Assembly: GCA_037379345.1 (NCBI GenBank)
Contig: CM074518.1
Location: 27,404,001 to 27,468,000 of the forward strand
From: Perna viridis
Lineage: Eukaryota
DNA: 64,000 nucleotides
Reading direction: 5' to 3'
The position numbers and the translations under genes are program-made. Of this stretch, positions 1 through 34,500 are shown piece after piece; position 1 is the first letter of the stretch; every line of letters begins with the position of its first letter. The notes below the pieces were generated by a model. That model had not been told where the DNA came from. It saw only the letters and a list, made by a program, of their open reading frames with translations, and ran no database searches.

Positions 1-1452
1 GAGGACATCTTGGTAGCGAGTATTGTTTTCAACATGATCGATGAAATCGACAAAGGTGTTTAGAATTAATCCATTCTGCCAAAATCCATCATAACCATTC
101 CACTCCTAAAATAAAAGACAGATGTTTGGTCATGCATTCATGGACGGTGCGTTTTTGTGTCGGTTTTATTCAATGCAATGCACTTACTGAAATGCACAGC
201 CGGTACGCTGTAACGTTCACTTTATCGAAAGGCGGAGGTGGAGGGACGGTTTGTTTTGAAAATGAAAGATTGAACGATGCTGCATACGACTTTCATACAA
301 GCCGAAGAAAGCCTTTTCTGTGTCATTTAAAGACATTAGTTGCCATTATGTATTTAAAGTATATAAATATGGACTATTTGAAAATGGTTCGTATGGATAC
401 AAGGAAAAAATTCTATAAAGAATAGTTCTATTTTGACATCTATCACCGGAAAGCTAAGTCGTAACTGGGTTCGACTAATTTGGTATTTAATATCCATTTG
501 TTATGTGTTTTATGGGCTCACATTCCTAGCTGTTGCCACACCCAAACTATACTTTATACAAACAATAGGGTCCCAAGAGACTGAATCGGTCACCTACTTA
601 ATTTGTTGTTTTTCAAGGGTAATAACTCTAACAAGGAGCTGTCCAAAGGTTTAGACTCAAAAGAAGACTTTGGTAGGACTTATCATAAGGATCATTTTAT
701 CAATTGAAAGTTTCATTCTATTTATTATAGTTTTTAAGATATTGGCTGAAAACTACTAAATGAAAAATTGTTAAGAGCAATAATCCTAACAAGGAATCGT
801 CTGACAACTTTGATCGCGTGGAGACTTTTGTAGGCCTTACACGTGTAATAAGGATCATTTCAACAATTGAAAGAATTAACGCTTTTGGAAATATATGCGA
901 ATACTACTGTCTAAGCAATATACCCCAAGAAGCTTTTAAGCCAAGTTTGGTTCCAATGGGACAAGTAGTGCAGAAAAAGAAGATTTTTGAAAGAAATACC
1001 ATTAAAAATAGCCAAAAATTTCGAAAAAGGACAATAACTCCTACATGGCTAAACAAATTCGAACGAAATTTGAACAAAGATAGATCTTATCATGTTGACC
1101 ACTTTTACCCATGTCAGAATTAGGTAATACCTAATGGTTTGTGAGATATATTTAGTAAACTACTGACTGACCCCCATATGTTCCATTTTTAGCTCACATG
1201 GCCTTCGGCAAATAAGATGCAAGGGGTTAAAACGTTTCGCGAATTAAGTCACCTTACCTGATACGTGAACAGTCCTGACAACGGTGAAGGGTACCAGTTT
1301 GCCTGGTGAGCAAACTGTATCTTACATGCCATGTAGGCATTGAAGTCACCACCAAACATTTCCATCGAGCACGTGCTGTTGGCGCTATCGCCATTGACAA
1401 TTAAAAAGCTTACAGCAGTTGTCAAGAAAGTGACACGGAACACAGAATTCAT
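1..1452 (-). CDS. GH76-family glycoside hydrolase paralog A (secreted), partial: exon 1 1452-1258, exon 2 from 105 running off the left edge
   Basis: Exon 1 (65 codons) is MNSVFRVTFLTTAVSFLIVNG (signal-peptide-like) then STCSMEMFGGDFNAYMACKIQFAHQANWYPSPLSGLFTYQ, followed by donor GTAAGG. After acceptor TTTTAG, exon 2 starts at 105 in phase 0 and reads EWNGYDGFWQNGLILNTFVDFIDHVENNTRYQDVL, closely matching paralogs B and C. The catalytic region lies outside the window. Confidence 0.88.
559..1222 (+). mobile_element. Helentron-type non-autonomous element (HINE-like), family 1, degraded copy in the intron of paralog A
   Basis: The 5' end AACAATAGGGTCCCAAGAGACTGAATCGGTCACCT and 3' end AGCTCACATGGCCTTCGGC match the copies at 3674 and 52974. 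Internal blocks are shared (GACTTTGGTAGGACTTATCATAAGGA, CCAAGTTTGGTTCCAAT). Confidence 0.7.
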
Positions 1453-1914
1453 ATTATTAATTTGAAAAAAGGAATGTGCTTGACATTTGATAAAATTATT
1501 ATACACATTTATCATCTACTTTTTATCATATGATAATAACCGCAACTATATAAACTTGTCAGATATATAGGTCGGATTTCATCATTTCACATACAAAACT
1601 TTTAACACATGTATATTTCAAGGATGATATCCTCAAAAATTGTTTTGATGACGTGAAATGTTCTCGTGATTTAACAAGTAAGCTGTAGCTAAGATACCAA
1701 AACGTAAATTTTATTGATTATTCTTTCATTAAATAACTTTATTCCAAATAATTCAATATACCTGTAACGTTTGTTTTTCGCTGTCTATAGATTAAAATTG
1801 CTCATGACCAAATACTTTTCTAAAAAATAAGTCAACTATTATATGATTTCGCAACGACATATAAACAGTTAAACAAAAACCCGTAAAAATCGTCAATGCG
1901 TATTCAAATTAGCA

Positions 1915-4900
1915 TCATGTACACACACCTTTTACACATTTCTGAGTATAATCACAACATGTGTAAGAGGACTGATAGCTACAACAGGGTTTTCCCTTCG
2001 GGCAGGGAAAGTCACTACATGTCAGATGTTGAGGCGTCGGGTTACTAGGGCTAAAATTACAATATGTGCCAGTGCAATTTGTCCCAGGCTTTATAGCGGA
2101 CACGAACAAGTCTAAGACGGCTGTTTGTTGCATCGGTGCTCCAACTGTGAAGGGACCGCTCCAATCGGGCGAAAATACTGGCCCAGACCTATTAAAAAAT
2201 GGAGGGCCATCTAGATATGTAATGTTACACTTGGTCATCGGTATCTTGTCACACATGTTATTTTCTATGTTTGCTAAGATATTGTGGTCAAGATAATCTT
2301 GATATTCTTGCCTTTGTTTTGGATCATCAAGAACGTCCATTAAATATCTTAAATTTCGTACAAAAATTCCTTTGAACATTTTCTGGTCATCGTTACAATC
2401 AGGTTCGCACCATTCTTGGAGGATTCCGGAAGTAGAATTAGTAGTATTTCTGATTTCTGCTTGGGCAATTTTATTGGCAAGATCAATGTATGATTTCTTC
2501 TTATGAATTTTGTAAAACTCCACCAGGCCCCCAATTGCGGTTCCACCTAAATAAGTCGGTCCAAAAAAGTCGTTTCCAGTACAGTTGTCGAGTGTACCGT
2601 CATGCACCAAATACGTTGTATTGTCTATTATTCCGTTTTTCGTGACCCAATTCCAAATTTGGTGCATCTGAGTCAGGTATTTTAATTTTTTTGTAAACCT
2701 ATAAAGCTTTCCAGCAGCTTGAATACACTCTAAATTAGTTATTGAGACTTTTTGGTCGAAATCATTGTCAAACCACAAGCCCCCGCCACATGTACCAGTT
2801 TTGTCCCATCCAGTTTTCCAAATCCAATCGAAAACTTCCTGACTGTGGTCCAAAAACTCCTTCCAACCGAAAACCTCGTATATTCTGGCGTAACTAAGGG
2901 CATACCAAGCCATATCGTCAAATGAAGGGTACGGCCCGTATGCCTCTTGAAGTTCGTACAATTCGCGACCAGAGCTTTTGATGACGTCAATATAACGCGT
3001 GTTGTTACCGACATATGCGATATAGTCGGTAAAGGTATTTAGAACTATTCCATTCTCCCAGAAACCATCATATCCATTCCATTCCTGTTAAAGAAAGTTG
3101 TATTTAATAAAGACATTTAAATTGCTGTATTATTTGTTTGGTCCTTTTCTCTAAGTAGGTCACTATAAAAAAAAACTATGTTTTATATGACAGACCGTGA
3201 CGAATTTGCTTTAAGAAACAATTTCAACTAATCATGAAAATGTGCTGTGGTCAATGTTCTTTGAGAACTGATTTTACGGGTGAGTGATAAATTTACACTG
3301 CACAATATCCATACAACGGTATCATCGCCACAATCCCAGAACATCGGGAAAANNNNNNNNNNNNNNNNNNNNNNNNNNNNNNNNNNNNNNNNNNNNNNNN
3401 NNNNNNNNNNNNNNNNNNNNNNNNNNNNNNNNNNNNNNNNNNNNNNNNNNNNNNNNNNNNNNNNNNNNNNNNNNNNNNNNNNNNNNNNNNNNNNNNNNNN
3501 NNNNNNNNNNNNNNNNTCAGTAAATCTGTGTATGTACTTCCCATTCTTTAACAATAAGCATATTACAAAAAGCAGTGTGTAGTACATAAAGTGTGACGAT
3601 GTGTTTCTTTTACACCTTTTTTATATTTTAATATGACGTGCTTCAAAGCCTTTTAGACCACAGCCGCAGTAGTAAAACAAGAGGCTCCCAGGAGCCTGAA
3701 TCCCTTACCCGGTAGAGTTTTTGCCTTTCAAAGGCAATAAATTTAACAAGTTTTCCAACAATTTTGACTCAAGACGACTTTGGTAGGACTTATCATAAGG
3801 ACCACTTCAGCAATTGAAAGTTTCTTTCTATCTATCATAGTTTTCAAGATATTGGCTGATAACTATTTAAAAAAAAAACTCATTTTTGCCTGTCCATGGC
3901 AATAACTCTTACAAGGAGTCGTCTGACAACTTTTATCCCTGAAGACTTTCGTATTCCTAATGATAAGGATCATTGCAGCTACTGAAATTATTTGGCTAAA
4001 CCCAATGGTAGATATACATGTATGTGGTAAACTACTGACTGACCCCTGTCCTATTTTAGTAATGGTGGCCATGTTTTTCGACGGATCAAAAATCCCCACA
4101 TTAGATCTATGCAGGATTACCCAAAAAACGTTCATACCAGGTTTGGTTCCAATTGGTCAAATAGTGTCAGAAGAGAAGATTTTCGAAGAAATAACACTTA
4201 AAGTAGCAAAAAACGTCAAAAAGGGCAATAACTCCAACATAGCTTAATGGATTAGAACAAAAATTTGACCATGGCTAGATCTCATCATGCTGAATAGTTT
4301 TATCCGGTCAGAATTTGGCTAAACCTAACGGTTTTGGAAATATATGCGAAAAACTACTATCATACACCTATGTTCTATTTTTAGTAACGGCGGCCATGTT
4401 TTTCGATGGATCAAGGATCTCCTCATCAATTCTATGCAGGATATCCCAAGGAATATTTATACCAAGTTTGGTTCCAATTGATCAAGTAATGTCAGAGGAG
4501 AATTTATAAAAAAAAAATGTTGACGACGACGGACGACGACGGACGCTTAGTGATGGCAATAGCTCACATGGCCTTCGGCCAGATGAGCTAAAAAGTGATA
4601 ACCACATGACCAACGTCATAGACTGTGTCTATTCAACAATATGAAGAATTAGAGTCGAAATAAAACGGCAACTCCATTTTACTATTGTTTCACCACGGGA
4701 TGGTCATTTATGTCGCATTGTTTTACCCCCAGCGCGATAGCGAGGAGTTAAATAACGACATGAATGGCCAGCCCGTGGTAAAAAGTAATAAAATGGAGAT
4801 TCCGTGATTTATTTCTTTAATTTACCATATCAGTTATGGTAGAAGACTATTTGACAATTTTGTTTTCAGACTTCGATGTATATATTCCTTCGTGTTAACA

Positions 4901-5160
4901 GCATGCATGTGATATACTTCAATTCAGCAGAAAATGTCTGCAGCAGACCGAAAATATTAAGACTGTTGGCTTACCTGGTAGCTAAACAGTCCAGAAATTG
5001 GCGAAGGATACCAGTTCGCCTGGTGAGAAAATTGTGTCTTACATGCCAAATAGGCATTGAAGTCACCACCAAACATTTCCAACGAGCATGTGCTGTTTGA
5101 AGTGTCGCCATTAGCAACCACAATTATATATGCGATGAATAAAACTACGTAATAAAACAT
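1915..5160 (-). CDS. GH76-family glycoside hydrolase paralog B (secreted, 451 aa) with C-terminal Cys-rich module; exons 5160-4975 and 3084-1915
   Basis: Signal peptide MFYYVVLFIAYIIVVANG; phase-0 intron CAG|GTAAGC ... TTTAACAG|GAA. GH76 motifs SFDDMAW (Asp-Asp pair), CGGGLWF, KVSITN, HDG, TY..G and GILQEWCEPDCNDDQKMFKGIFVRNL. Many N-x-S/T sequons. The C-terminal pattern is C-X4-C-X5-CC-X7-CC-X5-C-X4-C. The intron contains a 164-N gap. Confidence 0.92.
3353..3516. other. Assembly gap (164 N) in the intron of GH76 paralog B
   Basis: Run of N. Confidence 1.
3674..4594 (+). mobile_element. Helentron-type non-autonomous element, family 1, near-complete copy in the intron of paralog B
   Basis: 5' palindrome AGGCTCCCAGGAGCCT, an internally repeated unit, a (GAC/GGAC)n microsatellite, and a 3' hairpin AGCTCA-CA-TGGCC-TTC-GGCCA-GA-TGAGCT followed by an A-run. 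Confidence 0.78.
4646..4822. repeat. Long imperfect palindrome (fold-back element) in the intron of paralog B
   Basis: CTCCATTTTACTATT..CACCACGGGATGGTCATT..TGTCG pairs with CGACA..AATGGCCAGCCCGTGGT..AGTAATAAAATGGAG around a centre near 4735. Confidence 0.75.
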
Positions 5161-5689
5161 GATATTCTGTTTATTACCAATTTGAACTTTTAGTTTAATC
5201 AGGGTATAATCATATCAGTATCACTCATACATCTATCTAATAAAGTTAAAGTTCAACATCATGTAGACCTCAATCTAACATACATAAAACCAGCATTACA
5301 GTGATTGTTTTGATGGAGAGGGGCCTGGGAAAGTCCAAGGTAAGTTGAAGTTTATTACAACCATATTGTATTGCAAAATTATCAAATGGATCAAACTATA
5401 GTTATACAAACTTACGTTGTCTTCTCCATAATGAACATAACAAATTTAAGATACACACAATAATCATACATCAAAAATAAAGTAAACATATTAAGATATC
5501 TATACATCAATCAAAGAAGATATAATACTACAATATTTAAAACCTAAATTCATTGCATATGAATGAAAAACAAAAGTGTTTGAAATAGTATAGAAATGCA
5601 CCGTCAAATCTTGACTTAGTTGGCTTGATAAAGCTTTTTACGGTAATGAAGTTACATGAAGTAATAAGAGTGTTTTACCTACCTCATGC

Positions 5690-7120
5690 TCTTCGTACAT
5701 GTCTGCGCATAAAGCTGAGATCGACTGCCGCCAAGTCTGTTCCTTGCATTTCTTTTCATATAATTCCAAACTCTTTCAACTCTCTTTCTACCATTCTTGT
5801 CCGTGCTTCTTTAGGTCTTCCCCCTTTTTTTTCCCGTAAGGAATTTATTTGAACATTTGGACATACTTTGTTCATTCTCATCTCGTGTCCTATCCACCTC
5901 CGTCTCTAATCGAATGCTTTTCTGCGATGTTTTGCGCCATATGTCTCTATCAAAGATCTCATTTGGCCAATAGATATTGCACATTTTCCAAAGGTAGGTA
6001 AAATAATGACAGGTTCTTCATGTTACTCTGAACCAGTTCCCAGCATTCTGCTCAATAGAGTAATATGAATTTGACATTGCTACTATAAACCTTGTCTCAT
6101 TCATATGTGTACACTAAACCAATCAGATTTTATTGTAAATGATAAATACGTGCGGTATCTCCCATCTTATATTTTATGGTAATATTCTTCACAAAGCACG
6201 GAAAGCTCAATACTCACCCAGTTAGTTGACTAAACTGTTGAATAGTCTAATTTGTGAGGGATATAGTTATGATATTGTTGTCAAAATCGTTTGATAGCAA
6301 TTTTTGGTATAAACATTGATTCTTTCATTGGGTTTTTACAAAGAAACTAACACACACTATTTGAAAGCTTTTTTCGGCATGACGCGGATTGTGTCCTTAA
6401 TGTAACTATGCCTTATGATGGATCGTGATTCTCAACCCTGCATGGAAAGAATTGGAATCAATATTACATACCATGAAGGCATAACGTTTTGTAGATTTAA
6501 ACTGGTCTGGTGCTGGGAATGTCAGTTTACTGTTAGTTGTCCCTTGTTTGTGCAATTGTGTAACGTATGATCAGTTTCTTTATTTCTGTATTAACAAGGG
6601 ATTTTGACCTTTTTGAACTGATTTTTAGGTGTGTTTTGTTGTGTAATACTTTTTTTCCAGTATGGCCAGATTTAAAAATAGGAGTGTTGTGATCACGCCG
6701 AAGTACTTTAGTCCTGCTGTATTTTTGTGCCTGTCCAGAAATGTGTATGTGTTGTTTCGTTTTCACTTTCAGTTTAACTATTTCGCTGTACCTGTGTATA
6801 ATGTTGTTTTAGGGCGAGCTGCAGGCTGCACTCTGGATTTAGGGTTTCCTCGTCATTCATTGAAGACACATGGCTGACCATGCGGTTGTTATCTCTTTAG
6901 CATATTCATCATATCCATTCTTGTTATATCTAATTACTTTCATTTTTACTACACAAATCTTTAATGATTCTGTACAGCATACTAAGGTTTCCCCAAAGTG
7001 TTGCTGCCTCTTCCTCATTACTTAGGTCATCTATGTATTTACTCTTATCTAATCTAGTTTTTGCTTTTATTTCTTTGTCATTTGTGTTAGCATGATGAGG
7101 TCTATCTCTCATCAAATTTT
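5690..7120 (-). mobile_element. Degraded RTE-like LINE fragments with an internal deletion and later insertions
   Basis: The minus strand translates to DKEIKAKTRLDKSKYIDDLSNEEEAA..GNLSMLYRIIKDL (EN-RT linker-like) at 7085-6950. At 6000-5765 it gives YLWKMCNIYWPNEIFDRDIWRKT..RRRWIGH..GRPKEARTRMVERELK (RTE-type C-terminus). The fragments are frameshifted. Confidence 0.72.
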
Positions 7121-7296
7121 CTTGTTAATATGTTAAGCATGTTGAAGTTATTACCCATCTTTGACATCTTTTTGCTATTTTAATGTAATTACTTTTCAAA
7201 ACATTTTCTTCTAAGAAACTACTGGGCAGAATTCAATGAAAACTGATATATGAATGTTCTCTAGACATAAGAAGACAAAAAATAGGTATTAAGCCA

Positions 7297-7589
7297 ATAC
7301 TTGTCTTAATCTAAACCACTGTCTTTCAGCTAAGTGTATTCAACTCAATCAAAAAAATTGAATACAATGTATATACGTTCTAATAATGACCGTGGAAAAA
7401 AAAGTTTGACCTTAATTCTGGCCGAATGCCAACATTTAAAAAAATACTTGCCTTAATCTAAACCACTGTCTTTCAGCTAAGTGTATTCAACTCAATCAAA
7501 AAAAATGAATACAATGTATATACGTACTAATAATGACCGTGAAAAAAAATGTTGACCTTAATTCTGGCCGAATGCCAACATTTAAAAAA
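7297..7589. repeat. Direct tandem duplication, about 147 bp x2
   Basis: AATACTTG.CTTAATCTAAACCACTGTCTTTCAGC...GCCGAATGCCAACATTTAAAAAA is repeated with few differences. Confidence 0.92.
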
Positions 7590-8404
7590 TTTGTCATTTT
7601 TACCACATTTCAATGCCCTGTATTCCCTAAAATAACACTTTCAACAAGCTGATTTTTTATACCCAATAAGATGCACCATTAGCATACTTTCTTTGAATGA
7701 ATAAAGAACCTATTAGAACCTGAGATAGTGTTTATTGTTTTCTAAAGACCGTAAAATACAGCATTGTCACAATGGCGCCCAACATGATAATATGAACCTA
7801 CAAAAATCATAAGTAGTATCAAAATATAGTGAATGCCCTACAACTCTCAATCTGTCTGTGCGTCCATCTGCCTCTTTTAAATCATGTCAATACCTTTCTC
7901 TTTAACTTGTTTTTCTTTCAAGATAGACTTTTTGATATTTGGCATGTTGGTAGATGATGTGTTCAATACCAGGATTTGTGACAATTGACCTTCAACTTTG
8001 ACCTTTAGTAAAAAATTTGTGTGCAATGTGGCTGTTTCTAACATGTGTCCCGGCTATAAATATGATAATTCTTTTATCTTTCGACATATAAAAATGTACG
8101 TAGCCTTTTCATATTTGGCATGTGGGTACATAATCTAAAGAATATTGCTTCCCATAGTTGATGACCTTAAACACTTGCATGTTGTTGTTTTTTTATTGTA
8201 AAACATCTTAAAAAGCAGCAACAATTTCTTCTAAATACCAGATAGTCATTTTACTTCTTTACTACTTTTACTTCATTATATGTACATGCCCATATTAAAG
8301 TTTTAAAAATATCTTGAATAATTGTCCACGTGGTGCTTAACAAGGTCAAAATTTTGTGGTTACAATGTTATCCTTTATCATTTTCTGTAATGCTTGTAGT
8401 GCAT

Positions 8405-8560
8405 GAGTAATCAAGGGAACCAAGGTTATAGCGGTAATCAAAAGAATGTAATCCAGGGACAAAGACCAGACATGGAAAACAGGCATACACAACAAAGAAC
8501 ATAAAGTAACTAAAATCATACATACAAAGTAACAAAAGTAAATGAGCAACTCGGACTCCA
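8405..8560 (-). mobile_element. Interspersed repeat (retroposon-like 3' fragment); related copies at 47188-47375, 60037-60350 and 30480-30580
   Basis: Three copies share the same boundary GAGTAATCAAGGGAACCAAG and extend different distances, the pattern expected of 5' truncation. Confidence 0.75.
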
Positions 8561-8833
8561 CTCGGACATCACTCATGATCCATGGCAGGGTCTGTTTCAG
8601 TCTCTTGCTAATCATACAACAATGAATCACTCTGATAAATGTATTTAAGTTTCCTTACCTGAAACAGAATGGACAAGGGTTTTATATTTTTTGATATAAA
8701 ATAGATTTACATGAAATTTAAAACAAGGAGTATTATATTAAATCAAGTTATTTTCGAAGAGATAATTATGTAAATGTTTGAAAATGACTTTTTTCCATGA
8801 CCTTACCTACGCAATTCAACAGAGAAATAGGTC

Positions 8834-9237
8834 TATTCCCGACTTGCGGACCAACATTTTGTCAATATTTATCTCCCTTTGGAGCAGGTGTCTATTCGGA
8901 ACACGTAAGGTTTTCCATCCGATATCGACGATACTTTAGAAAATCTTGAAGGTCAAAAGGGAATTTCTCGTTCTACTGACCCTGCCATAAATTTTCTTTA
9001 TCCGGGATACAAATGAAAATCATCATTATGTAACCTACCAACAAAATGAAACACCCTGTAAATTTTAGAAACACCGTTGTGTTTGTCTGCTGGGGATTCC
9101 ATTTTCATTCGAGTTACCTCTTTTTTCTGCACCCGAATCCGAACATCGAATGGAGAGACTTCGAAATTACACCTGCTCTTACTCTGCAAAAACAGGATAA
9201 AATATGGCTGCATCCCGAGCTCCACAGGTAGGGAATA
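8834..9237. mobile_element. MITE (about 400 bp) with TTCCC(G/T)ACTTGCGGA TIRs flanked by TA
   Basis: TA-TTCCCGACTTGCGGA ... TCCACAGGTAGGGAA-TA, with a highly similar inverted copy at 47779-48186. Confidence 0.85.
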
Positions 9238-9576
9238 GTTTGATGGGTATGATTTATCACCGAATTTGAATAGAGGGACAAACATTGAGACAGCTACAAT
9301 GCAGATATCTATGATTTCTGAATTAATTGTTGAAAATTATGCATAATGGCTTACAGACTGTATTTGCAGAATTTTTAGCATATGTTGACTTTTATAATCA
9401 CAACATACAAATTCTTGATCGCAAAAAAAATGACCAATAATTACTTAGTTTAATTTTTTCAGGTGATAGAGAGTACCATTTACCTCAGATTAAGAAAAAG
9501 ATCATTTTAGGTGTCGCCCATGTTGGACGGAGCTCAATGCCGTATATTAGACAGAACAGTGCATCCACACTAGTGT

Positions 9577-10098
9577 TTGTTTGTTTGTTTGTTGGCGTTT
9601 AACGTCCCAGCAGCAATATTTCAGCTATATTCAGATGATGAACATGAAATTGATGATAAAATGAACATGAAATGATGATGAAATGAAAAAGGGATGGGAC
9701 ACAAGGAGAATGTGGGGTCGACAAATTTTGATTGCCACTAGAAATAGGGAGAGGTGGGTAGGGTCGGCCAATTTAGCCTCCAGTGGCGGAGCCCTATGGT
9801 TCCTACTCCGGGAGAATACCACAGTAGGGTTCTTTAACGTGCGAGGAACGTGGCATCTTTCCCAACACGGTGCACCGCTATGGTTTGCGGTCAGGTTTTC
9901 CGTATTATAGCCTGACAACCCCAGCATGTAACACGCCAGGGGTACCCCATTCCGCCACCTGGGGCACACATCCCAGTTGCTCTGTGGGCAGAGCGCCCTA
10001 GTCCCCGGCTAGAGTTCTGAGCACTATTTAGTCGCCTTTTACGACAAGCTTAGCGCTGCTGCAGGCCTATTCTTTTAACACCCGGACCTGCACGGGGG
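9577..10098 (-). mobile_element. Full-length SINE-like retroposon (about 520 bp) with structured non-tRNA head and (AAAC)n tail
   Basis: Perfect 13-bp TSD TCCACACTAGTGT (9564-9576 and 10099-10111). The tail is GCTGAAATATTGCTGCTGGGACGTTAAAC..(AAAC)n. A second copy lies at 44306-44816. Confidence 0.9.
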
Positions 10099-10963
10099 TC
10101 CACACTAGTGTAATCGTCTACTTCCGTGTCGACGAATTTCGTCACTTCCGTTAGTATTTTTAGCCATGCATATCCGCCACCGAGTGCAGCAAATAACACT
10201 TATATTTGACACTCACAAGCCCTGTAGTCAGACTTGTTGGACCGGACTTCTGTCATAGATTGTTAATCAAGAACTGCAAAAAAGTGAAGCCTCTAAACAC
10301 CGAGACATAATTCCTTATATTGCACACGGTAAAATTTCTTGGTGCTTGATACGACACGTGTTCTTGATCTTGGTCTTCAAGGAAATTGTTGTATTTTATG
10401 CTTCCCGGCAGACTAAACATTTGCTCATGTTTAGAATACGAGTGTACCGTAAAAAATCTATTAGATTTATTCCTATCTTACAGTCCGAAACTTACTTTGT
10501 CCGATATCTAGCGTATACACCAGTAATGCATCCAAAATGGAATATACCGACGTGAATGTAAGTCTACTGGTTTACGCTGAGTGCAAGCCACTTTGACATA
10601 ATCAAGGAACACGTTTTTTTTTTTCGAAAGTAAAATTGCCGTGTTGAATATCTAAACCGGTTCATATTAGGTATTCGTTTTCCCTTTTTTAGTACTGGTT
10701 TATATACTTTCTGATTTGATATGCCGTACCGTACAGCGTCGACTAAGTTCCCCAGAATAGACGCATTGCAAAATATAACGTTCAAAAACAATATGCGAAG
10801 AAACTAAGTAGGATATGTCTATTACACTATACAAAGTGTTTCAAGTTATCTCCGGGCACGATCTGTTTGGCTATTTAAGATTGTATAAGTAACTGTCGTT
10901 TTTTTCCATACCATTAGACGGCTAAAACATTAGGTTGTAGTAAGATACACACGTACATAAAAA

Positions 10964-11300
10964 AAATAGAAGATGTGGTATGATTGCCAATGGGACTGTC
11001 ATCCATCAAAAGCCAAGCAATGAACAATTAAACTTCCACAGGTCACCTCACGCACTTTGGTGACGGGCAAACCTTGTATCATAAAGCAAGCTGTGAGAGG
11101 TCCCAGAATAGATAAAGTGAAACTATTCATAAAAGACGAAAATCTATAGAAAAAACACGTAAAATGGATAACAATGAACATAAAGAGCAACGACAACCAC
11201 TGAATACAGATTCCTTGTTAGGGACAGGCAAAAAAAGTATGTGACGGTGGTTAAACATGTGTTGTGAGTGCGCAACCCTCTCCCAACCTGGGACAAACTA
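10964..11300 (+). repeat. Probable interspersed repeat (AGATGTGGTATGATTGCCAATG-type)
   Basis: Recognised from memory as a common mussel repeat motif. It has only one copy in the window, so it is not internally confirmed. Confidence 0.4.
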
Positions 11301-13019
11301 TAAAAATCTGTTGAAGTTGGATTAGACTCTTAAGATCGATACAGAATACAAATACTTTATCAAATGGGACAAAAGACATCAGGCTGTATCTACCCTGAAA
11401 GAGTATTCACTTTTTCTGTAAGCTAGTTCAAAATCGAAAATCAACTTGATAAACACACCTTGTCCGCTCAAACGCCCCACATGTTTTAGTAAAAAATATC
11501 TTAGAGGTCTTCGTCCCAATGCCAAGATAAAAAACAGATGTTCACATGGCACATTAACATAATAACGATCCGTGGGAACTATTAAACCCCACCGGCATGG
11601 AATAGAGTACCTTTGTGAAGATCAGTTTGTTAACTAACGGAATTTATCAAAAACATATTATAAAATGTCCAAGGATAAAACAAGGTCTTCATACACATGT
11701 CAAGATAAAAAGTAATGGTAGGAAAAAGGACGAGCTGTAATATAGTTATATTAAATGTTGACTTACTTTTTTCGTATAATAAGTTTAAGAAGCAATTAAT
11801 AAACAGAATAAAAAGTAATGGCCGGAAAAAGACGAAATGTAATAGAATCAAATTAAATTTGGATTTACTTTTTTTCGTATAAGAAGTTTAAGAAGCAATA
11901 AACAGAATGTTTTGTAGTCTAAAGTAGTCTAAAAACTGTCTATAAATATGAAAATGCTTCAGTTAACTTTCTGTCTTCAATATTTATCAATTATGGACTT
12001 AACGAAGTCAACACGTTATATATGGACCTATTCAGATTATATTGACGGAGAAGGTATTGACTGAGTGAAAGTCCTAAATACATATGCGGATCTAAATTCA
12101 GAAGTATAGCGTCAATATATTCAAAAATAGAAACAGGGCTTCAAGTACGTTGAATATCCTTTGAATCATGTGATCATGATAACCAATTGAAGAAGAATGT
12201 TACACCATGTGTAATGTTCGAAAATATGAGGCATAAGGATATCCGAAAATCATATTGGATTTGACGAGTGCGTATATCTTGCCCCAATGCTGTAAAATAT
12301 TTAACAATGCTGAGCGAGCTTTGAACATCCTGGAACAAAAGAAAGACATAAAAATGTATCTAATAATAAAAATAAAATGTAAGAAAATTATTTTTTCTAA
12401 TCGTAAAGGCGTTTATTTTCGTGAGACTTTTGAGTGGTTGTATACAAGTGCATGAACTGTGTAAAAAAATCCTGCCAAAGCATAAACCATAGTTCCTTAA
12501 TTGCCTTTGATGTGAATTAGTTCGTGTCTACTGTCATGATCACGGGAACATCATCGTTTTTCTTTACCTCTTTTTTATGTTTTTAGTGTCCGTTGTTGTG
12601 TATTTCATTATTTTCTTTCTATTTGGAGTGCGGTTGGTACTATGAATGACAAATTATTTTGTTTAGTTCTAAGACGTGTATAACGTTTTAGCTACAATCT
12701 GTACAAATTAATCGTGAACTGTCGGTGCCCTTGTTAAATGTAATCTATCCACAATAAAACATTTGTCGGATCAAGTATTACAAAAATGTACAAGTACACG
12801 CTGCAATCGGAAAGCCTGTGCTACAAATGTTGGTTCTAAAAGGTTGAATTTGATTATCTAGTTAACACCAGTCCATTGTATATTCTATGGCTTATAAAGT
12901 CGAATATCGCACAAGATGTAGCTAATAAATTAGAACTTTTATAAGCCGGTCTCTAAAAGTAGAGAGCCGGCAAGTGAATTTTTTACAATCATTATCTTTA
13001 TTTTTTTTCAAAGCGTTAG

Positions 13020-13660
13020 TTAAAAGAAATGATGCGGCGTTGACAACTCAAAAATACATATATTACTTTTGCTTAAAATATCAATTCTAATCGAATTTAG
13101 GAGAATGAAACACTTTTTAACAAGGTATGGGAAGCAATCATTTAGGTATGCTGCTCCAGTCCTCTTGAAATCTCTGTCGGAGGAACTCGAACAGTGCTCT
13201 AATTTTTATCAATTTAAATCCACGATTTCACGAAGGAAGGAGGAAAAGTGTTCCTGTCTGCTGAATCTGATTTAATTGTTAATCAATGGCTAGATCGGTG
13301 TGCCTAAAACCATATTACTTGTGTGCCTTTGAATTTTGTTGACGTATTTTTGTTTGTGTGTTTTGCTTCATTTGCTTATAGTCTCGCTGCTGTTTTTGTT
13401 TGATACTTTGATACTTGCCTGCTTAACATAATTATTTTGCTTACTAGATCTATTTCTGTATAACTGCTTTATGTGTTTTTATCATATGTATAACTGTCAG
13501 ACCACGTTTCATTTTATGCTGTCTATGTTTCATTTCATTTACTGTCCATTATTTTGTGTATGCTTTCTCTGTCACAGTATATATCTTTCACTTAATGTCG
13601 GTTGTAAAGGCTCATTAAGAGCTTATGTTGCTGAATCTAAATAAAGCTTATTTGATTTGT
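13020..13660 (+). mobile_element. 3' end of a CR1/L2-like LINE (ORF2 C-terminus, 3' UTR and tail)
   Basis: ORF 13069-13275 contains TRYGKQSFRYAAPVLLKSLSEELEQCSNFYQFKSTISRRKEEKCSC, matching the typical T.YG..SFRY..P.LWN.L.....FK.....C.C end. A T-rich UTR follows, then AATAAA and TTTGATTTG. Confidence 0.72.
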
Positions 13661-13888
13661 TTTAATATAAAACACCAACATATGAAGCAACATGTCGTTT
13701 GGGGTTTTGTTCTTTTCTCGACGATATACGGTTAAAACTTAATGATTCAATGCCCTCTACACCCCACTTGAAAATTTCTACAACCATCCCAGTGGAATGA
13801 TAATAAGTGGATTACATACCTGAAGATTTATTATGAAAAATGTACAAAACACCTCAGATTTAATTCAGTTTAACAAGGTATATTGTTA

Positions 13889-15955
13889 TCATATACAAAT
13901 ACCATGTTTGCTACAACTTTGATCACGTGAGCAGCAGGAGTATGAAATAAACGGAACCGAATTATATTCACAACATTCCTCCCCAAGAGGACACGGTTGG
14001 TCTACGCATGTGAGGGGATGTGGTGAAGGGAAATGCGGATCAAAGTTACAATTAACTCCAGAACACTTGGTCTTGGGTTTTATTGCGGCTACAAAAAGAT
14101 CAAACGCTGCAGTTTGTTGTTCTGGGGCACCGAACGTGAATGGGCCACTCCAGTCTGGTCCAAAAAGTGGACCTGAAGTATTATAATACGGAGGGCCGTC
14201 TCGAAATGTCATTTTGCATTCAATTATTGGCTGTTTATCGCATACAGTGTTCTTTTTCGTGGCATTTACATTGAAATCAAGCCAGACTTTGTATTGTTGG
14301 TACAACTCCGGATTTAGATATTCTAAGGAGTCCAACAAGTACCTGAGATTCCGTACAAATATTCCTTTAAAAACAATTTGGTCTCTATTACAATTAGGTT
14401 CGCAGTACTCGGTGAAGATACCCGTTTTTGACGTGCTGTAAGCAATTATGGCATCCGCAATTTTCACAGCTAAATCAAGCAGCGATCTCTTCCTCAACAC
14501 TTTATACATTTCTACTAGCCCTCCAATCATTGTGCCCGACAAATAGGATGGTCCGTAGTATTGATTCGGTCCACAGTTACTTGTAGCCCCGTCATTTATC
14601 AAATAAGTAGTCTCATTCACCAACTTATTCATCGAAATGTAATGATAAATTAAGTTCAATCTTTCAAGATAGTATGGGTCCTTCGTGAGTCGAAAAAGTC
14701 TACCCGCTAATTGAAAATATATTAAATTAGTGATAGTTTGTTTGCTCCTGAATTCGTTATCGAACCAAAACCCTCCACCACAGTGTCCTTCGTGGTCCCA
14801 TCCAGTCTTCCAAACCCAAATAAAAATATCTTTTGACGTGTCCAAGAACTTTCGTATACCTAAGACTTCATATATTCTACTGTAACTCAAGCCAAACCAG
14901 CCGATATCATCGAATGATGGATATGGACCATAAGCCTCTAGTAAAGACTTCAGTTGACGTTGAGATGACGTAACTACACTGATGTATCGCCTATGTTTTG
15001 CGTATGCGGCGAAGTTTACCATGGTCTCCAATATTAGCCCATTCTGCCAAAAGCCAACATAGCCATTCCAAACCTTTAAAAAGTATATCAAAATTAAGAG
15101 TAAATTATGATGGGTGATTTTACTGCATTTTTTGGGTGCACCTCTTTCATTTGAAGCATACTAGACATCGGAAACTATTTTATTACTCAATAATAAACGG
15201 TTTCGTGACTGTCATCACCGCATCTATCCCATAGAAAATGGAATTGAGGGTACTACATAAACAAAGAAATGTGCAATCCTATTCTATCTCGAAATACATG
15301 TAGACGATGGTTAGAGGCCCCGGGCACTTCCTATATTTAGAAGGGGAATGGGCGTGCCGCTGGAATAGGAACCATTTTTCGCTTAAAAATGTGAATAGGT
15401 GGGGAAAACAAACACAATTAAATGATAAGTCAATAAAGATTACATTACGAATTATATGGATAGTCAAAAACATCCTTGTCCTATCATGGGGGTGGACAGG
15501 GAGTGTCATAATTCCCACTACCCTCCTCTAGACCACCGCCTTCCACCCTCCTGACCACCGCTTCGCGACCCCTTTCATTTTACCCCCGAATTATTGTTCC
15601 AAACCATAATCCCCGAATCCCATATGTTTCACTTCGTGTTCGCCGCCCCTTCAACCACCGTTCTCCGTCCCCTCCATCACCGTTCCCCACCCCTTCAACT
15701 ATCGATTTCCACCCCCTAACCCCCGTATTCCCATCCTCCCAGTCCACACTCTCTATCAGATGTGAATAGGTAGGAAAAACGAACATGAAGATGTGGTAAG
15801 TCGATAAAGTTTACCTTACGAATTATATAGATAGTCAAAAATATCCTTGTTCTATCACCTGTTGTAATTATTTTCGTATTTGTAGAATAATTAAATGCAT
15901 GATGAATATTGTTATTGTATTTCCTAGTGCATCATATCAAGGGAACACCCCTTAA

Positions 15956-15986
<31 letters not shown>

Positions 15987-16052
15987 TGAGGTCTGAAAAA
16001 TTCCTTCTCGTAGGATTAATCTAGGGCGGTATGGTTGTACGGGACAGTTCAC

Positions 16053-16101
<49 letters not shown>

Positions 16102-16874
16102 CCCCAGGACAATAGGTATCGATGAAAGCTTGGGATTTATAAAGTAACTCTTTGTCAAACTGGATACTACATGTACAAGTAACTTTTGCTTTTATATGCT
16201 CCAATGAATAGATTATTTCATTATTTATTACTCATCTGTTATGGTCGAAATTATTGTCATTTCGTAGACTTGTCAACGCAGATGTACATGGATTGACGAT
16301 GGCTGAATTTCCTTTGAAGCGTAATTTTAACCTTCCTCTAATCAACACTAGTAAGCTTAATCCGAATTTCTTCGACCTTGCAACCCCATTATTTTATTTA
16401 GATTCCGATACCGGACTAAGGAAGTAGGCTTCACATTCTTCACGGTATTTTTTGTATGGTTAGCGTCCCTAGAGATCATTTGATATTTCTTGGGTTTACT
16501 GTTGTTTCACAATATCATTTTTTGTGGGGCTGAAGATTTAGTATTATTGTTTTAAATATAAATGGAAGTAAATGAAGATTCATAAACAGCGGTCGTGCGT
16601 GATCCGCAAGGATAGTCAAGACCGTAAAAAATCCCAATCATCATCATTCATAAAAAATTCGTATCAATTTCCCTTGAACCCCTTAACTTACCAGGTAACT
16701 GTAGAGACCAGCAATTGGTGAAGGGAACCAGTTTGACTGGAGCGCGAATTGTGCTCTACATGCCGTAAGAGCGGCATAGTCGTCTTCAAACATTTCATTT
16801 GTACATGTTTCATGTCCACTAGCAAGATGTTCCTTCCGGAATAAAACAAATAAACAAACACAAACGATTCTCAT
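13889..16874 (-). CDS. GH76-family glycoside hydrolase paralog C (455 aa) with C-terminal Cys-rich module; exons 16874-16692 and 15073-13889
   Basis: Exon 1 is MRIVCVCLFVLF...TCTNEMFEDDYAALTACRAQFALQSNWFPSPIAGLYSYL|GTAAGT, and the acceptor TTTTTAAAG|GTT is at the same position and phase as in A and B. Motifs SFDDIGW, CGGGFWF, KQTITN and CEPNCNRDQIVFKGIFVRNL are present, with the same 8-Cys tail as B. Confidence 0.92.
15389..15857. repeat. About 100-bp direct repeat (15389-15487, 15759-15857) bracketing a C-rich tract in the intron of paralog C
   Basis: ATGTGAATAGGT.GG.AAAAC...TTACGAATTATAT.GATAGTCAAAAA.ATCCTTGT.CTATCA occurs twice. Confidence 0.8.
15955..16101. repeat. Microsatellites (TA)n(GA)n and (GT)n(AT)n
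   Basis: Directly visible dinucleotide runs. Confidence 0.95.
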
Positions 16875-20081: not shown

Positions 20082-20510
20082 ATATCAAATTACATGTACT
20101 TGGGAACACAAAAAAAGAAAATTGAAAAAGAAATAAAACCATAAGGTTGCTTCCTTTCAACAAAAAATATTGAATCCATCAAAGTGATGATAGATCAGTA
20201 ATAAAAGAAAATACACTGGTATCTGATAATAAATGGGGTATAAAGAGCAAAGTTTTTTTTGAATTTCTAGACACTGTTAACAAATCAAATTCCAGCACAA
20301 TAAAAGTCTTAAAATAAGTTAGTACATGTTATTTTGCTATCAAATGACTAACAGATTAAAAACAAAATTGTTTTTCATTGATGGTCATAGAAAATGCAAA
20401 TATACAAGTATAACTCACTTCTATTATTGATGAATGTTAACAAATTAAAGAGACAATTACAAGTGTTTACATTAGGCCAACATTTATGCCCTTTACTTTA
20501 ATAGATACAC

Positions 20511-31500: not shown

Positions 31501-34500
31501 GGCATTGATTGTATTACCTACATGAGGTTCTAATTCAAATCTGATATATAAAGTAAGAGATGTAATGATATACTTTGTTTTAAAACTTGTTGTATCAGCA
31601 AGTGTGCAAGTTATCAACAAGTTACATGTATTTAGATACTGCATCATCATTTACTTTTGTGGGGATAAAATTTTGTGATTTTGTCTCTGAAACTTGATTT
31701 CGTGGATTCTCGATTAATATTTTTTAATGGGAATGTACTTCTGATTCAAGCTCTTGGATCTGTCGTGTTCTTCCTTATAAACTGGACAGTTCCCACTCCC
31801 TCTTGGCAAGGTATATAGGAGAATCTTTTGAATTAAGTATTGTTTGCTGATACCATGTTTTCGATAGCCATTTATCAATTAAAATAATACAATGTTTATT
31901 CATTTCATCTCAAATACCTAGGTTTCCTTCTGTTTCTGTAAATGTGCAAATCAAGAGTTTCACTAAACAATGACATCAGCACCGTCACAGTTAATGAAAA
32001 CAATATTTTGAATATGCCAAACTCATTTATTAAAGTTTTGACATCCATCTGTAAACAGTTAATCAAGTGGATTAAAGGATTAGTGAGAATTGTTTTCACC
32101 TTTGTAAATCATCTTTTATCATCTGCTAATTAAATGACAATGGGCTCGAGGACAGCTTGGCACTCCCATTATTGTGTATTGCATGCTCTACCGCACACAT
32201 AGGTGAAGAAAATTACAGCAGCATGTTTTGAGGGAATATTTAAGATTTTTTTATTTTATATACATGTAAGTGCATTTGAATTCAGAATAATCTTTTATTT
32301 AAAATTGAAATATATATTTGGAGATACATTTTCATGGGGACTTATTTTCATGGATTTTTTCTACCCACAAAATAAACGAAATTAAATCTCCAAAGAAAAT
32401 TTCTGCTTTTACAGTAACTATATAATACTATCACCTTAAAATGTGTCTTAATTATAAAATCCTTGAATTTAGAGAGTCATTTAGACCAGTACATTTGACT
32501 CTTTCAATTGAGGAAATGTCAGTTCAATTTACATTTTTAATAATTGTATTTACTGAGCATATCATTAAAATGCTACTCTCATTAGATAATTAACTTTATA
32601 AATGATATTTCATGAGTCGATAAACTTATCTAGCTATTTATGTACGCCACACCAACAATTAAAGCCTTTAAGGACTACTTTTTTTGATCCCTGTGTTTTG
32701 CCACAATTTTTTTGAATGTATAAAATTAAATAAGAATAAAATAAAAGTAACATATCAAATGTAATTATAAGAATTAAATGTTTCATTTATGATGTTTCAT
32801 TTTGGCATGTAATAGCACTGACTGGTTGCACATTGTGGACATGAAGCAATAGTGAGCTGTGCTACTGTTAACGCTTGTACATGCCGATGAACATTCAATT
32901 ATCAAATGTTATACTTTGATATGGAGGATCAGCTTTGTGGTGGATAAACAAAACAGAAAGCTTATGAACAAGAAAATATATAACACCCTTGGTAAGGAGA
33001 GGACACAGTGATGCTTTACATACCTTTTATTTGATAATAATCATGATGTTCTTCAGAGGTACACTCTAGTAGATCTTCTAGCAATAATTTGTACCTCAAG
33101 AAAAGAAAAACCAAAATAAAAATCTCTTCAAAGTTGCTCAATAAACATTTAGATGCCAATTTGTTCATTTAAGAGCAAGTCATGAAATTTCTTTTGTAGT
33201 CCAGCTGGGGCACAACTCCAGTTCTTAAACAGCTGGGGCACAACTCTCAAAATTGAATAAAACTTGCCTTCTAATGATTATATGGTATTAATGGGACATT
33301 GTGCTTAAATTTCATAAAGATCCATTCAATAAATTACAAGATTTGTATAAATGACAGCGACACCATTATAAATTATATATCTGCAATACATAGCTATTAA
33401 ACTTGATCTGTATTTCATGGCTTACAACATTCTGCTTAAGTTAGAAAAGAATTGAATGAAAAATTCTATAGTAGTCATGCACAAACCAAAAGCTTGACAG
33501 ATGAACTTGTGTTAGAATGAAAGAACATGAGAATCGCCTGACTTATTGAGTCAGGATAATTTTATATTAGAACAGCAGGTATTAAAGAAGAAACTAGCAA
33601 AATTGACATTAATATGCAATAAAAAACAAAAAAAATTAAATTTGTAAAATCTTGATTTGGAAAAGTGGATATCTGCTAAAGTAGTGGATGAAAACCATCC
33701 CTATTGAAAAAAAAAACAGTTCAATTTGATACCTAGGGATTCTCTGCACTGGTGTTATGAGTAAAGCATTCAATTTTAGACCCTGAACATCAGGCCGATC
33801 TTCTTGTCGCTGAATGAAATCTTTAAAATCTGTACTCTTTTGTGACCATTCCTATAGAAAGAAATAAAATACAAAAAAATTACCATGCGTGCATGATATG
33901 CCCATCCCCATGATGGAAGGAAATAGAATTTTTATATCACATAAGTTTACCCTTACAGTACAGGGATTTTTGTACCATGATAGACTTCTTATAATGAGAT
34001 GTTTTGAATAGAAATACAAGAATTTTTGTTCTCAAAGCTACAGTGCAATATGTGAAAAAATCCTATACAAAATATGAAAAAGTCCTATAACTCAGAAACT
34101 AAAAAAATATAATTTTCTCCAAAAAGTATACAGACCATTAGATCATGATCACAACAAATAATTGTGTCAAGTTAATAGTTGATTGAATGAGGGATTTTCA
34201 AGTATAAACAGCATAAAAAATCCCATGACAATATGAAAAAGTCAATTACTCAAGAATTTCATTTTTTTAATGTAGGTAAAATTCTATGAAGACACACTTT
34301 CATTATCTATGCACTATTTTTATTTCAACTTTTTATACCCTTAAATTCAAAGTCCTAACTCAAATTACTTTATGGGTAAGTAAGCCGTATGGACTATGTC
34401 AACGAATTTCCACCCCCCCCCCCCCCCGAAAAAAAAAAGAAGGCTCAGGTATAGGACTAATTTTTACTAAATGTGCTGTACAAAAAAAAATTACCTGAAG

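Follow-up and report, generated by a model that had tools for sequence, protein, structure and literature searches.

The 64,000-nt stretch analyzed here, referred to as the window, spans positions 27,404,001 to 27,468,000 of the forward strand of contig CM074518.1 in the Perna viridis assembly GCA_037379345.1; gene coordinates below are relative to it. On its minus strand, the window carries three co-oriented genes of glycoside hydrolase family 76 (GH76), here called A, B, and C. Considering all of the evidence, we find it highly probable that this is a conserved mussel locus whose three paralogs encode secreted, non-anchored GH76 enzymes of an old animal-type subfamily, putatively digestive endo-glycosidases. 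A tempting story of horizontal transfer therefore gives way to an old, conserved GH76 subfamily of animals whose members are mostly labelled "uncharacterized" in public databases. GH76 proteins in bivalves were already known, having been catalogued and annotated in those databases. New here are the proof that gene B is spliced across an assembly gap, the copy count for the whole genome, the intron positions common to distant animals, the synteny among mussels, and the animal-type subfamily with terminal modules of its own.

The window carries three intact, two-exon GH76 genes

Gene models were drawn from a listing of open reading frames and a three-frame reading of the minus strand, and splice sites were read directly. 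Each gene comprises two exons, opens with a signal-peptide-like start, and is interrupted by a GT..AG intron in phase 0 at the identical codon position. This reading of the splice sites confirms the arrangement proposed in an earlier note on this DNA, which had described three co-oriented paralogs with signal-peptide-like N termini and an identically placed phase-0 intron. Gene B consists of exon 1 (4975..5160; 62 aa with the signal-peptide-like start and a conserved Cys pair, ending ..SYQ), an intron of 1,890 nt as assembled (3085..4974), and exon 2 (1915..3084; 389 aa plus TGA), which encodes the GH76 domain followed by a Pro-rich linker and, at the C terminus, a Cys-rich module. Its junction reads TAC CAG/GTAAGC ... 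TAACAG/GAA TGG (slashes mark exon boundaries), giving the protein sequence ..SYQ/EWNGY.., with YQ/EWNGY at the gene A junction as well. Gene C is built likewise from exon 1 (16692..16874; 61 aa, signal-peptide-like start), a 1,618-nt intron (15074..16691), and exon 2 (13889..15073; 394 aa plus TGA, with the GH76 domain and Cys-rich tail), joined as TAC CTG/GTAAGT ... TTAAAG/GTT TGG to give ..SYL/VWNGY...

Gene A straddles the left edge of the window. Exon 1 occupies 1258..1452, with its ATG at 1450-1452, a signal-peptide-like start, a Cys pair, and the ending ..TYQ; it is followed by a 1,152-nt intron (106..1257) and by the start of exon 2 (1..105). The acceptor at 105 reads TTTTAG/GAGTGGAATGG, tabulated as TTTTAG/GAG TGG, and the whole junction is TAT CAG/GTAAGG ... 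TTTTAG/GAG TGG. The remainder of exon 2 lies left of the window, and the gene was recovered whole on locus L002, where exon 2 is an intact, stop-terminated frame of 392 aa (L002:1207-2385). The reading frames of A, B, and C are thus all intact. A six-frame search of the 723 Mb genome with the Pfam profile PF03663 (Glyco_hydro_76) returned exactly three GH76 loci, which are A, B, and C (135, 142.5, and 126.2 bits, respectively). The array therefore ends leftwards at gene A exon 2, and does not continue beyond the window as the earlier note had thought it might.

Transcripts join the gene B exons across the assembly gap

The sole gap in the window, an N run of estimated length at 3353-3516, falls within the gene B intron; since it is wholly intronic, no coding frame spans it. 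Two transcript contigs from separate studies (1,449 nt from run X1 and 1,376 nt from run X8) cover approximately 1745/1816-3083 and then 4974-5080, joining 3083 straight to 4974. The skipped 1,890 nt read CT..AC on the plus strand, that is, GT..AG on the gene strand. Because these contigs bridge the predicted junction, the exons flanking the gap belong to one spliced mRNA, and gene B is transcribed and spliced. In the raw RNA sequencing (RNA-seq) runs X21 and X22, first mates lay on the plus strand, which is what common stranded libraries yield for minus-strand RNA. No joint for the gene A intron was present among the transcript joints listed. Around the start of gene A, an X8 contig spans 1334-1496 and an X1 contig spans 1476-1786; an in-frame upstream ATG at 1513-1515 would prepend 21 residues to the signal-peptide-like start of this gene.

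The gap is the one feature that could suggest contamination or mis-assembly, with a microbial GH76 gene stitched into an animal scaffold or with gene B a chimera across the missing bases. We regard this explanation as extremely unlikely. The transcript contigs of two studies cross the gene B junction, the genes carry spliceosomal introns, and their GC content (0.33-0.40) is like that of the rest of the window. In addition, the contig is a chromosome-scale member of a 723 Mb, 46-contig assembly, and the same neighborhood recurs in an independent Mytilus edulis assembly (see below). Upstream of the array and on the same strand, exons of an animal RhoGEF DH domain match PF00621 at 33723-33860 and 34495-34698. 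The earlier note had reasoned that the introns and the RhoGEF gene argue against contamination, and this argument stands: the DH exons share the strand of the array on a real animal chromosome of more than 27 Mb.

Profile, motifs, and fold place A, B, and C in GH76

In all protein-level searches, exons 1 and 2 were queried separately. Against PF03663, whose gathering cut-off is 25.9 bits, exon 2 of gene B scored 132.8 bits (E = 2.7e-38) and exon 2 of gene C 125.6 bits (E = 4.2e-36). The exon-1 peptides alone gave no Pfam match because they are too short. The catalytic Asp-Asp pair is kept in all three proteins, as SYDDMAW in A, SFDDMAW in B, and SFDDIGW in C, and the motifs CGGG.W and C..C..DQ..FKGIFVRNLRYL are present in A, B, and C alike. 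In the bacterial enzyme BcGH76, the catalytic pair is D124/D125. At the codon level, the Asp-Asp pair maps to 2914-2919 in B and 14906-14911 in C, CGGG to 2779-2790 and 14771-14782, and FKGIF to 2362-2376 and 14357-14371, all on the minus strand. Both the GH76 assignment of the earlier note, with profile scores of 125-135 bits set against the cut-off, and the Asp-Asp, CGGG.W, and FKGIF motifs that it quoted for B and C are therefore real, and gene A retains the aspartates too. Across 47 animal, protist-like, and bacterial sequences, the residues D56, D57, W60, C99, G102, C168, G181, E224, and D233 are invariant.

The best match among solved structures, by sequence and by fold, is CtGH76 of Chaetomium thermophilum (PDB 9R4K), a member of the secreted "Fungi/Bacteria-mixed" type (PMC12295086). 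By sequence it aligned over residues 2-329 (E = 3.5e-34), followed by Aman6-type bacterial enzymes (approximately 4e-20). The query aspartates align to CtGH76 D163/D164, which are changed in the inactive variants 9r4o and 9r4p, and cysteines of the query match both CtGH76 disulfides (C204-C279 and C339-C345). An AlphaFold2 model of gene B exon 2, computed from the 47-sequence alignment, contained 11 long helices (mean predicted local distance difference test score [pLDDT] of 91.4; predicted template modeling score [pTM] of 0.90); the first helix is encoded by exon 1 and lies outside this model. When the model was searched with Foldseek, ranks 1 to 31 were all GH76 proteins, with CtGH76 first (E = 5.5e-18; TM score 0.77). 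By profile, fold, and catalytic pair, A, B, and C are true GH76 proteins.

Comparison with characterized members of the family separates what is common from what is specific to animals. The window proteins resemble CtGH76 in having the (alpha/alpha)6 barrel and the Asp-Asp pair, and they carry its CGGG and CN.DQ.FKG.F motifs as well as cysteines matching both of its disulfides; in each case there is a signal peptide, and a glycosylphosphatidylinositol (GPI) anchor is missing. Identity to CtGH76 is only 28-29%, however, and the animal proteins are extended by a Cys pair at the N terminus and by a Pro-rich linker with a Cys-rich module at the C terminus; they also sit on a long, separate stem. 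The bacterial endo-alpha-1,6-mannanases (Bacillus circulans Aman6/BcGH76, Bacteroides BT3792 and BT2949, and Salegentibacter ShGH76) belong to the same family and have the same fold and Asp-Asp pair; the window proteins match them at Foldseek E values of 1e-12 to 4e-10, at approximately 4e-20 in phmmer, and at 16-23% identity. These bacterial enzymes have proven mannanase activity, which in the window enzymes is putative; they lack terminal Cys modules of the animal type and are encoded by genes without introns. The fungal Dfg5/Dcw1 proteins (CtDfg5; PDB 6RY0) likewise have the GH76 fold and the aspartate pair in common with the window proteins; Dfg5 ranked 26th in the Foldseek search and gave no sequence match at E = 0.001 in the solved-structure search.

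The proteins look secreted and carry Cys-rich terminal modules

Secretion was judged by Kyte-Doolittle hydrophobicity. The N-terminal hydrophobic cores had mean values of 2.29 (A), 3.32 (B), and 3.53 (C) and were followed by small residues, and the C-terminal 20 residues were not hydrophobic, so that no GPI signal was seen on this scale. With hydrophobic N termini and non-hydrophobic C termini, the proteins look secreted and not GPI anchored, unlike Dfg5/Dcw1. Dfg5 proteins are anchored, wall-building enzymes attached through a GPI anchor or a C-terminal membrane segment; the window proteins appear soluble, have neither a hydrophobic C terminus nor an omega-site-like tail, and finish in a Cys-rich end (..QKC..G.C.). 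By hydropathy they fit the secreted Fungi/Bacteria-mixed subfamily, whose members have a signal peptide but neither a transmembrane helix nor a GPI omega-site.

The C-terminal module was found in every named animal homolog, with the consensus C.G..C.YDP..P.P..LTC...PCP.G..CC.Y...YTCC...QKC..G.C. The three Cys-rich tails matched no Pfam family, Granulin included, at E values up to 10. The module may target the enzyme to a substrate.

Animal sequences form their own GH76 clade

A word-indexed protein search with gene B exon 2 found 74 proteins. Bivalve homologs (Mytilus, Mercenaria, Dreissena, Mya, Mactra, Argopecten, Sinanodonta, Saccostrea, and Pinctada) were 50-60% identical to the query, and homologs from the gastropod Gigantopelta, amphioxus (several paralogs), the tunicates Ciona and Clavelina, the annelid Owenia, and the brachiopod Lingula were 44-51% identical. 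Named homologs therefore come from five phyla: Mollusca, Annelida, Brachiopoda, Cephalochordata, and Tunicata. The non-animal matches among the 74 proteins were bacterial only, at 29-31% identity. An exhaustive search of representatives gave approximately 20 above 130 bits, followed by a broad GH76 plateau at 32-37% identity, and a search of the ESM Atlas returned Ascomycota and bacterial GH76 clusters.

In a FastTree phylogeny of 174 sequences, all animal sequences plus a few others formed one clade (support 100; stem length 0.59) within which the bivalves were monophyletic (support 100). A quick IQ-TREE search of 60 sequences under LG+C20 gave the same animal-type clade (Shimodaira-Hasegawa-like approximate likelihood ratio test support [SH-aLRT] of 97; stem length 0.74), with support of 100 for bivalves, 100 for heterodonts, 99 for Saccostrea plus Pinctada, 96 for the window genes plus Mytilus, and 98 for A plus B. 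Named neighbors outside the clade were an Elusimicrobiales metagenome-assembled genome, the chytrid Boothiomyces on a very long branch, and many soil bacteria. A profile search seeded with the basal and neighboring sequences returned mostly soil-bacterial GH76 (Trebonia, Acidobacteriaceae, and Vicinamibacteraceae).

Identity within subfamilies of the GH76 network is typically above 35% in most cases (PMC12295086). The window proteins fall below this value both against CtGH76 of the secreted Fungi/Bacteria-mixed subfamily (28-29%) and against bacterial and unassigned members (27-33%). Given this low identity and a stem of 0.6-0.7, the animal sequences are best treated as a sister, animal-type subfamily. 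In this subfamily, the (alpha/alpha)6 barrel, which bears the Asp-Asp pair and two conserved disulfides, is preceded by an N-terminal Cys pair and followed first by a Pro-rich linker and then by a C-terminal Cys-rich module. Judging from the named homologs, we infer that the subfamily has persisted chiefly in aquatic invertebrates that feed on suspended or deposited matter.

The same gene family includes the bivalve GH76 genes of PMC7560691 and RefSeq/UniRef entries from Mytilus, Dreissena, and Owenia, which carry the labels "uncharacterized protein" or "mannan endo-1,6-alpha-mannosidase"; in Mytilus, the locus is also the same, with a flanking RhoGEF gene. The statement of the earlier note that GH76 is outside the standard set of animal carbohydrate-active enzymes therefore needs qualifying, as five bivalves with hepatopancreas expression had already been listed (PMC7560691). 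That study gives one copy per bivalve; we find three intact copies in Perna viridis and three in M. edulis. Our literature search on GH76 in oysters, mussels, amphioxus, and Ciona found PMC7560691 alone, and we found no earlier text that takes up the conserved introns, the Cys-rich tail, or how old animal GH76 is.

Two environmental or unassigned contigs touch on this clade. A 32 kb Joint Genome Institute metagenome contig, gene dense and eukaryotic, encodes P0077, which belongs to the animal-type clade but has no Cys-rich tail, near genes for UDP-glucose:glycoprotein glucosyltransferase, ANAPC_CDC26, JmjC, PhyH, and FtsH-like proteins; it may come from a protist relative, which could be of use in rooting the animal clade. 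A 1.08 Mb eukaryotic contig from the European Nucleotide Archive (ctg30953l) carries three tandem GH76 genes (L005:739-7458), at least one of them intronless (485 aa). Since this trio groups with the second Owenia paralog, tandem duplication recurs in this family.

Shared introns argue against a recent horizontal acquisition

Exact exon maps of Branchiostoma lanceolatum and Lingula place an intron precisely where the window genes have theirs (alignment column 218, phase 0); its borders are GT..AG in the former and GC..AG in the latter. A second phase-0 intron at column 290, not found in the window genes, is common to amphioxus and Lingula and approximately to Ciona, in which boundaries are approximate tblastn limits, the protein and the assembly being different. 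In Lingula anatina, the conserved phase-0 intron has a GC donor (CAG/GCAAGT; L008:3306-3307). In Owenia fusiformis, a GH76 gene (482 aa) is one uninterrupted exon (L009:3001-4449), which points to intron loss or retroposition in a family whose genes otherwise carry introns. Two intron positions common to lophotrochozoans and chordates are most simply explained by a gene that was already intron bearing in their common ancestor; parallel insertion at a CAG/G site is possible but unlikely to have happened twice. Animal-type GH76 was thus already an intron-bearing nuclear gene before the protostome-deuterostome split.

The earlier note had proposed instead that the array was a candidate for horizontal acquisition. 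In this reading, a bacterial or fungal GH76 gene would have entered a mollusc recently and then expanded in tandem. The composition of the family lends this some appeal, with 9,876 fungal and 5,450 bacterial sequences among the 15,624 of the GH76 network (PMC12295086), and vertebrates, arthropods, nematodes, echinoderms, and cnidarians were all missing from the named matches of the 74-protein search. We nevertheless consider a recent, lineage-specific transfer very improbable. Such an event would nest the animal sequences within a donor clade, with related phyla lacking the gene, and would leave the gene without ancient introns common to distant animals. What we observed, in unrooted trees, is a monophyletic animal clade of its own, recovering the bivalve orders and spanning five bilaterian phyla at 44-60% identity versus approximately 30% for the best bacterial matches, with introns at columns 218 and 290 common across the protostome-deuterostome divide. 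Synteny with M. edulis is also kept, and paralog synonymous sites are saturated. This is the kind of distribution that the earlier note had itself named as speaking against recent transfer. Because of the clade, the shared introns, and the spread across phyla, any transfer was older than the protostome-deuterostome split, or there was none.

A very ancient transfer is a different matter: a fungus, protist, or bacterium may have donated the gene to the bilaterian or animal stem, with later intron gain and with losses in vertebrates, ecdysozoans, and others. The patchy distribution among animals is consistent with such an event, as are the long stem (0.6-0.7) among GH76 of the secreted Fungi/Bacteria-mixed type and the basal position of P0077, which lacks the Cys-rich tail and lies on a compact eukaryotic contig. 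However, no donor clade encloses the animal sequences in the unrooted trees, in which one named neighbor is a long-branch chytrid. Since the opisthokonts include fungi as well as animals, differential loss accounts for the pattern just as well. We therefore view a very ancient transfer as rather unlikely; vertical descent from an opisthokont ancestor common to fungi, followed by many losses, is a possible alternative to it. The shared introns and the RhoGEF-GH76 neighborhood make this gene a clean case for calibrating screens for horizontal transfer that flag "microbial" carbohydrate-active enzyme families in animals.

The tandem array is conserved beside a RhoGEF gene in mussels

Old residency in the genome is also reflected in the locus itself. 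A protein cluster 77% identical to B (P0002) contains RefSeq/UniRef proteins of Mytilus trossulus, M. galloprovincialis, M. edulis, and M. coruscus. In M. edulis (OY782962.1; L010), a RhoGEF/PH gene is followed on one strand by three GH76 copies: a C-type copy with the same intron (P0007), a middle copy 92% identical to a 459-aa protein from another data set (P0006), and a P0002-type copy. The minus-strand order in the window matches, with RhoGEF followed by C, B, and A. The middle M. edulis copy (L010:18021-20211) is missing from the called genes, and its tblastn pieces shift frame near 20085; it may be a missed gene, or there may be a local frameshift or assembly error.

In the tree, gene C grouped with M. 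edulis P0007, and A and B were sisters with the Mytilus P0002 type just outside them. This topology would fit either a last A/B duplication that postdates the split from Mytilus or homogenization of the copies. Exon 2 of A and B is approximately 73% identical at the DNA level. The proportion of nonsynonymous differences (pN) between A and B was 0.14, and that of synonymous differences (pS) was 0.85, indicating saturated synonymous sites; for A or B versus C, pN was approximately 0.30. The mussel GH76 genes arose by tandem duplication beside a RhoGEF gene, and the copies are old and under purifying selection. The earlier note had spoken of an expanded enzyme system; the expansion is modest and old, as judged from the pS of A versus B and from the similar three-copy array in M. 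edulis.

A putative digestive role on alpha-1,6-mannose glycans

Bivalve GH76 was reported as a single copy in each of five bivalves and as highly expressed in hepatopancreas, and in oyster it was also expressed in male gonad (PMC7560691, Table 1). Together with this expression, the aspartate pair, the secretion signals, and purifying selection would fit a secreted digestive glycosidase acting on alpha-1,6-mannose glycans of ingested microbes. The functions that the earlier note had put forward, namely digestion of alpha-mannan, defense, or remodeling of GPI glycans, are accordingly hypothetical. The enzymes would be secreted, probably in the digestive gland, and would act as retaining endo-glycosidases in which the adjacent aspartates serve as nucleophile and acid/base; retaining cleavage of alpha-1,6-mannosidic or Man-alpha-1,4-GlcN bonds is characteristic of GH76. 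Their targets would be glycans built on an alpha-1,6-mannose core, with mannan of the fungal or yeast type and other microbial mannoglycans taken up with ingested particles as candidates. If these enzymes do cut alpha-mannan, then filter feeders would have a means of their own to digest fungal or yeast-type walls, independent of gut bacteria, which would bear on marine carbon turnover and bivalve nutrition.

Several considerations weigh against this interpretation and against the old age assigned to the subfamily. To our knowledge, no animal GH76 protein has been characterized enzymatically. On the exons of A and on B, depth in the raw RNA-seq runs X21 and X22 is at trace level. Among the CtGH76 canyon aromatics, Y217 and W287 are not conserved in the window proteins, so specificity may differ from that of CtGH76; in the structure-search alignment, W110 (replaced by F), W111, Y289, and F352 are conserved or conservatively replaced. 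With Man3, Man4, and Man6, alpha-1,6-mannanase activity of CtGH76 itself was undetectable; the enzyme bound GPI-core glycan fragments, and its authors suggest GPI-core glycans as possible ligands (PMC12295086). Given these results for the nearest solved relative, we infer the digestive alpha-mannan role, as we do the substrate, the tissue in Perna viridis, and the physiological role. Regarding age, the tree evidence consists of FastTree and a quick LG+C20 search, the trees are unrooted, and the basal members of the animal-type clade are mostly environmental sequences.

The enzymes may alternatively have no part in digesting mannan, acting on the animal's own or on microbial GPI-core glycans or N-glycans or serving in secreted recognition or antifungal defense with the Cys-rich tail as the binding part; perhaps they are Dfg5-like transglycosidases. 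The binding of GPI-core fragments by CtGH76 without hydrolysis of mannooligosaccharides is consistent with such a role, as is the oyster expression in male gonad, and the strict conservation of the Cys-rich module across animal phyla suggests targeting or binding. In contrast, neither the GPI-anchor signal nor the membrane segment typical of Dfg5/Dcw1 is present in the window proteins, and Dfg5 fell short of the E value threshold by sequence and ranked 26th by fold. Hepatopancreas is also the main reported tissue for bivalve GH76, and the taxa that keep the gene appear to be mostly particle feeders. We accordingly rate a non-digestive role as unlikely and favor secreted digestive endo-glycosidases. 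In a broader form of this proposal, a biochemically unstudied secreted class, ancestral to bilaterians, would comprise the first animal endo-alpha-mannanases with a Cys-rich targeting module of their own, kept in particle-feeding aquatic invertebrates for use on fungal and microbial mannan and lost in vertebrates and ecdysozoans; we put this forward tentatively, as conceivable but somewhat short of probable.

Repeats in the introns of genes A and B

Dispersed repeats lie within the introns of gene A (approximately 523-1044) and gene B (approximately 3655-4698), and the two intron stretches are 74-75% identical to each other by blastn. Over both repeats, the word depth of RNA contigs was in the thousands. 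Reads on them mostly fit partially, and many chimeric joints connected both intron copies. These repeats resemble transposon-derived elements that are transcribed from other sites in the genome.

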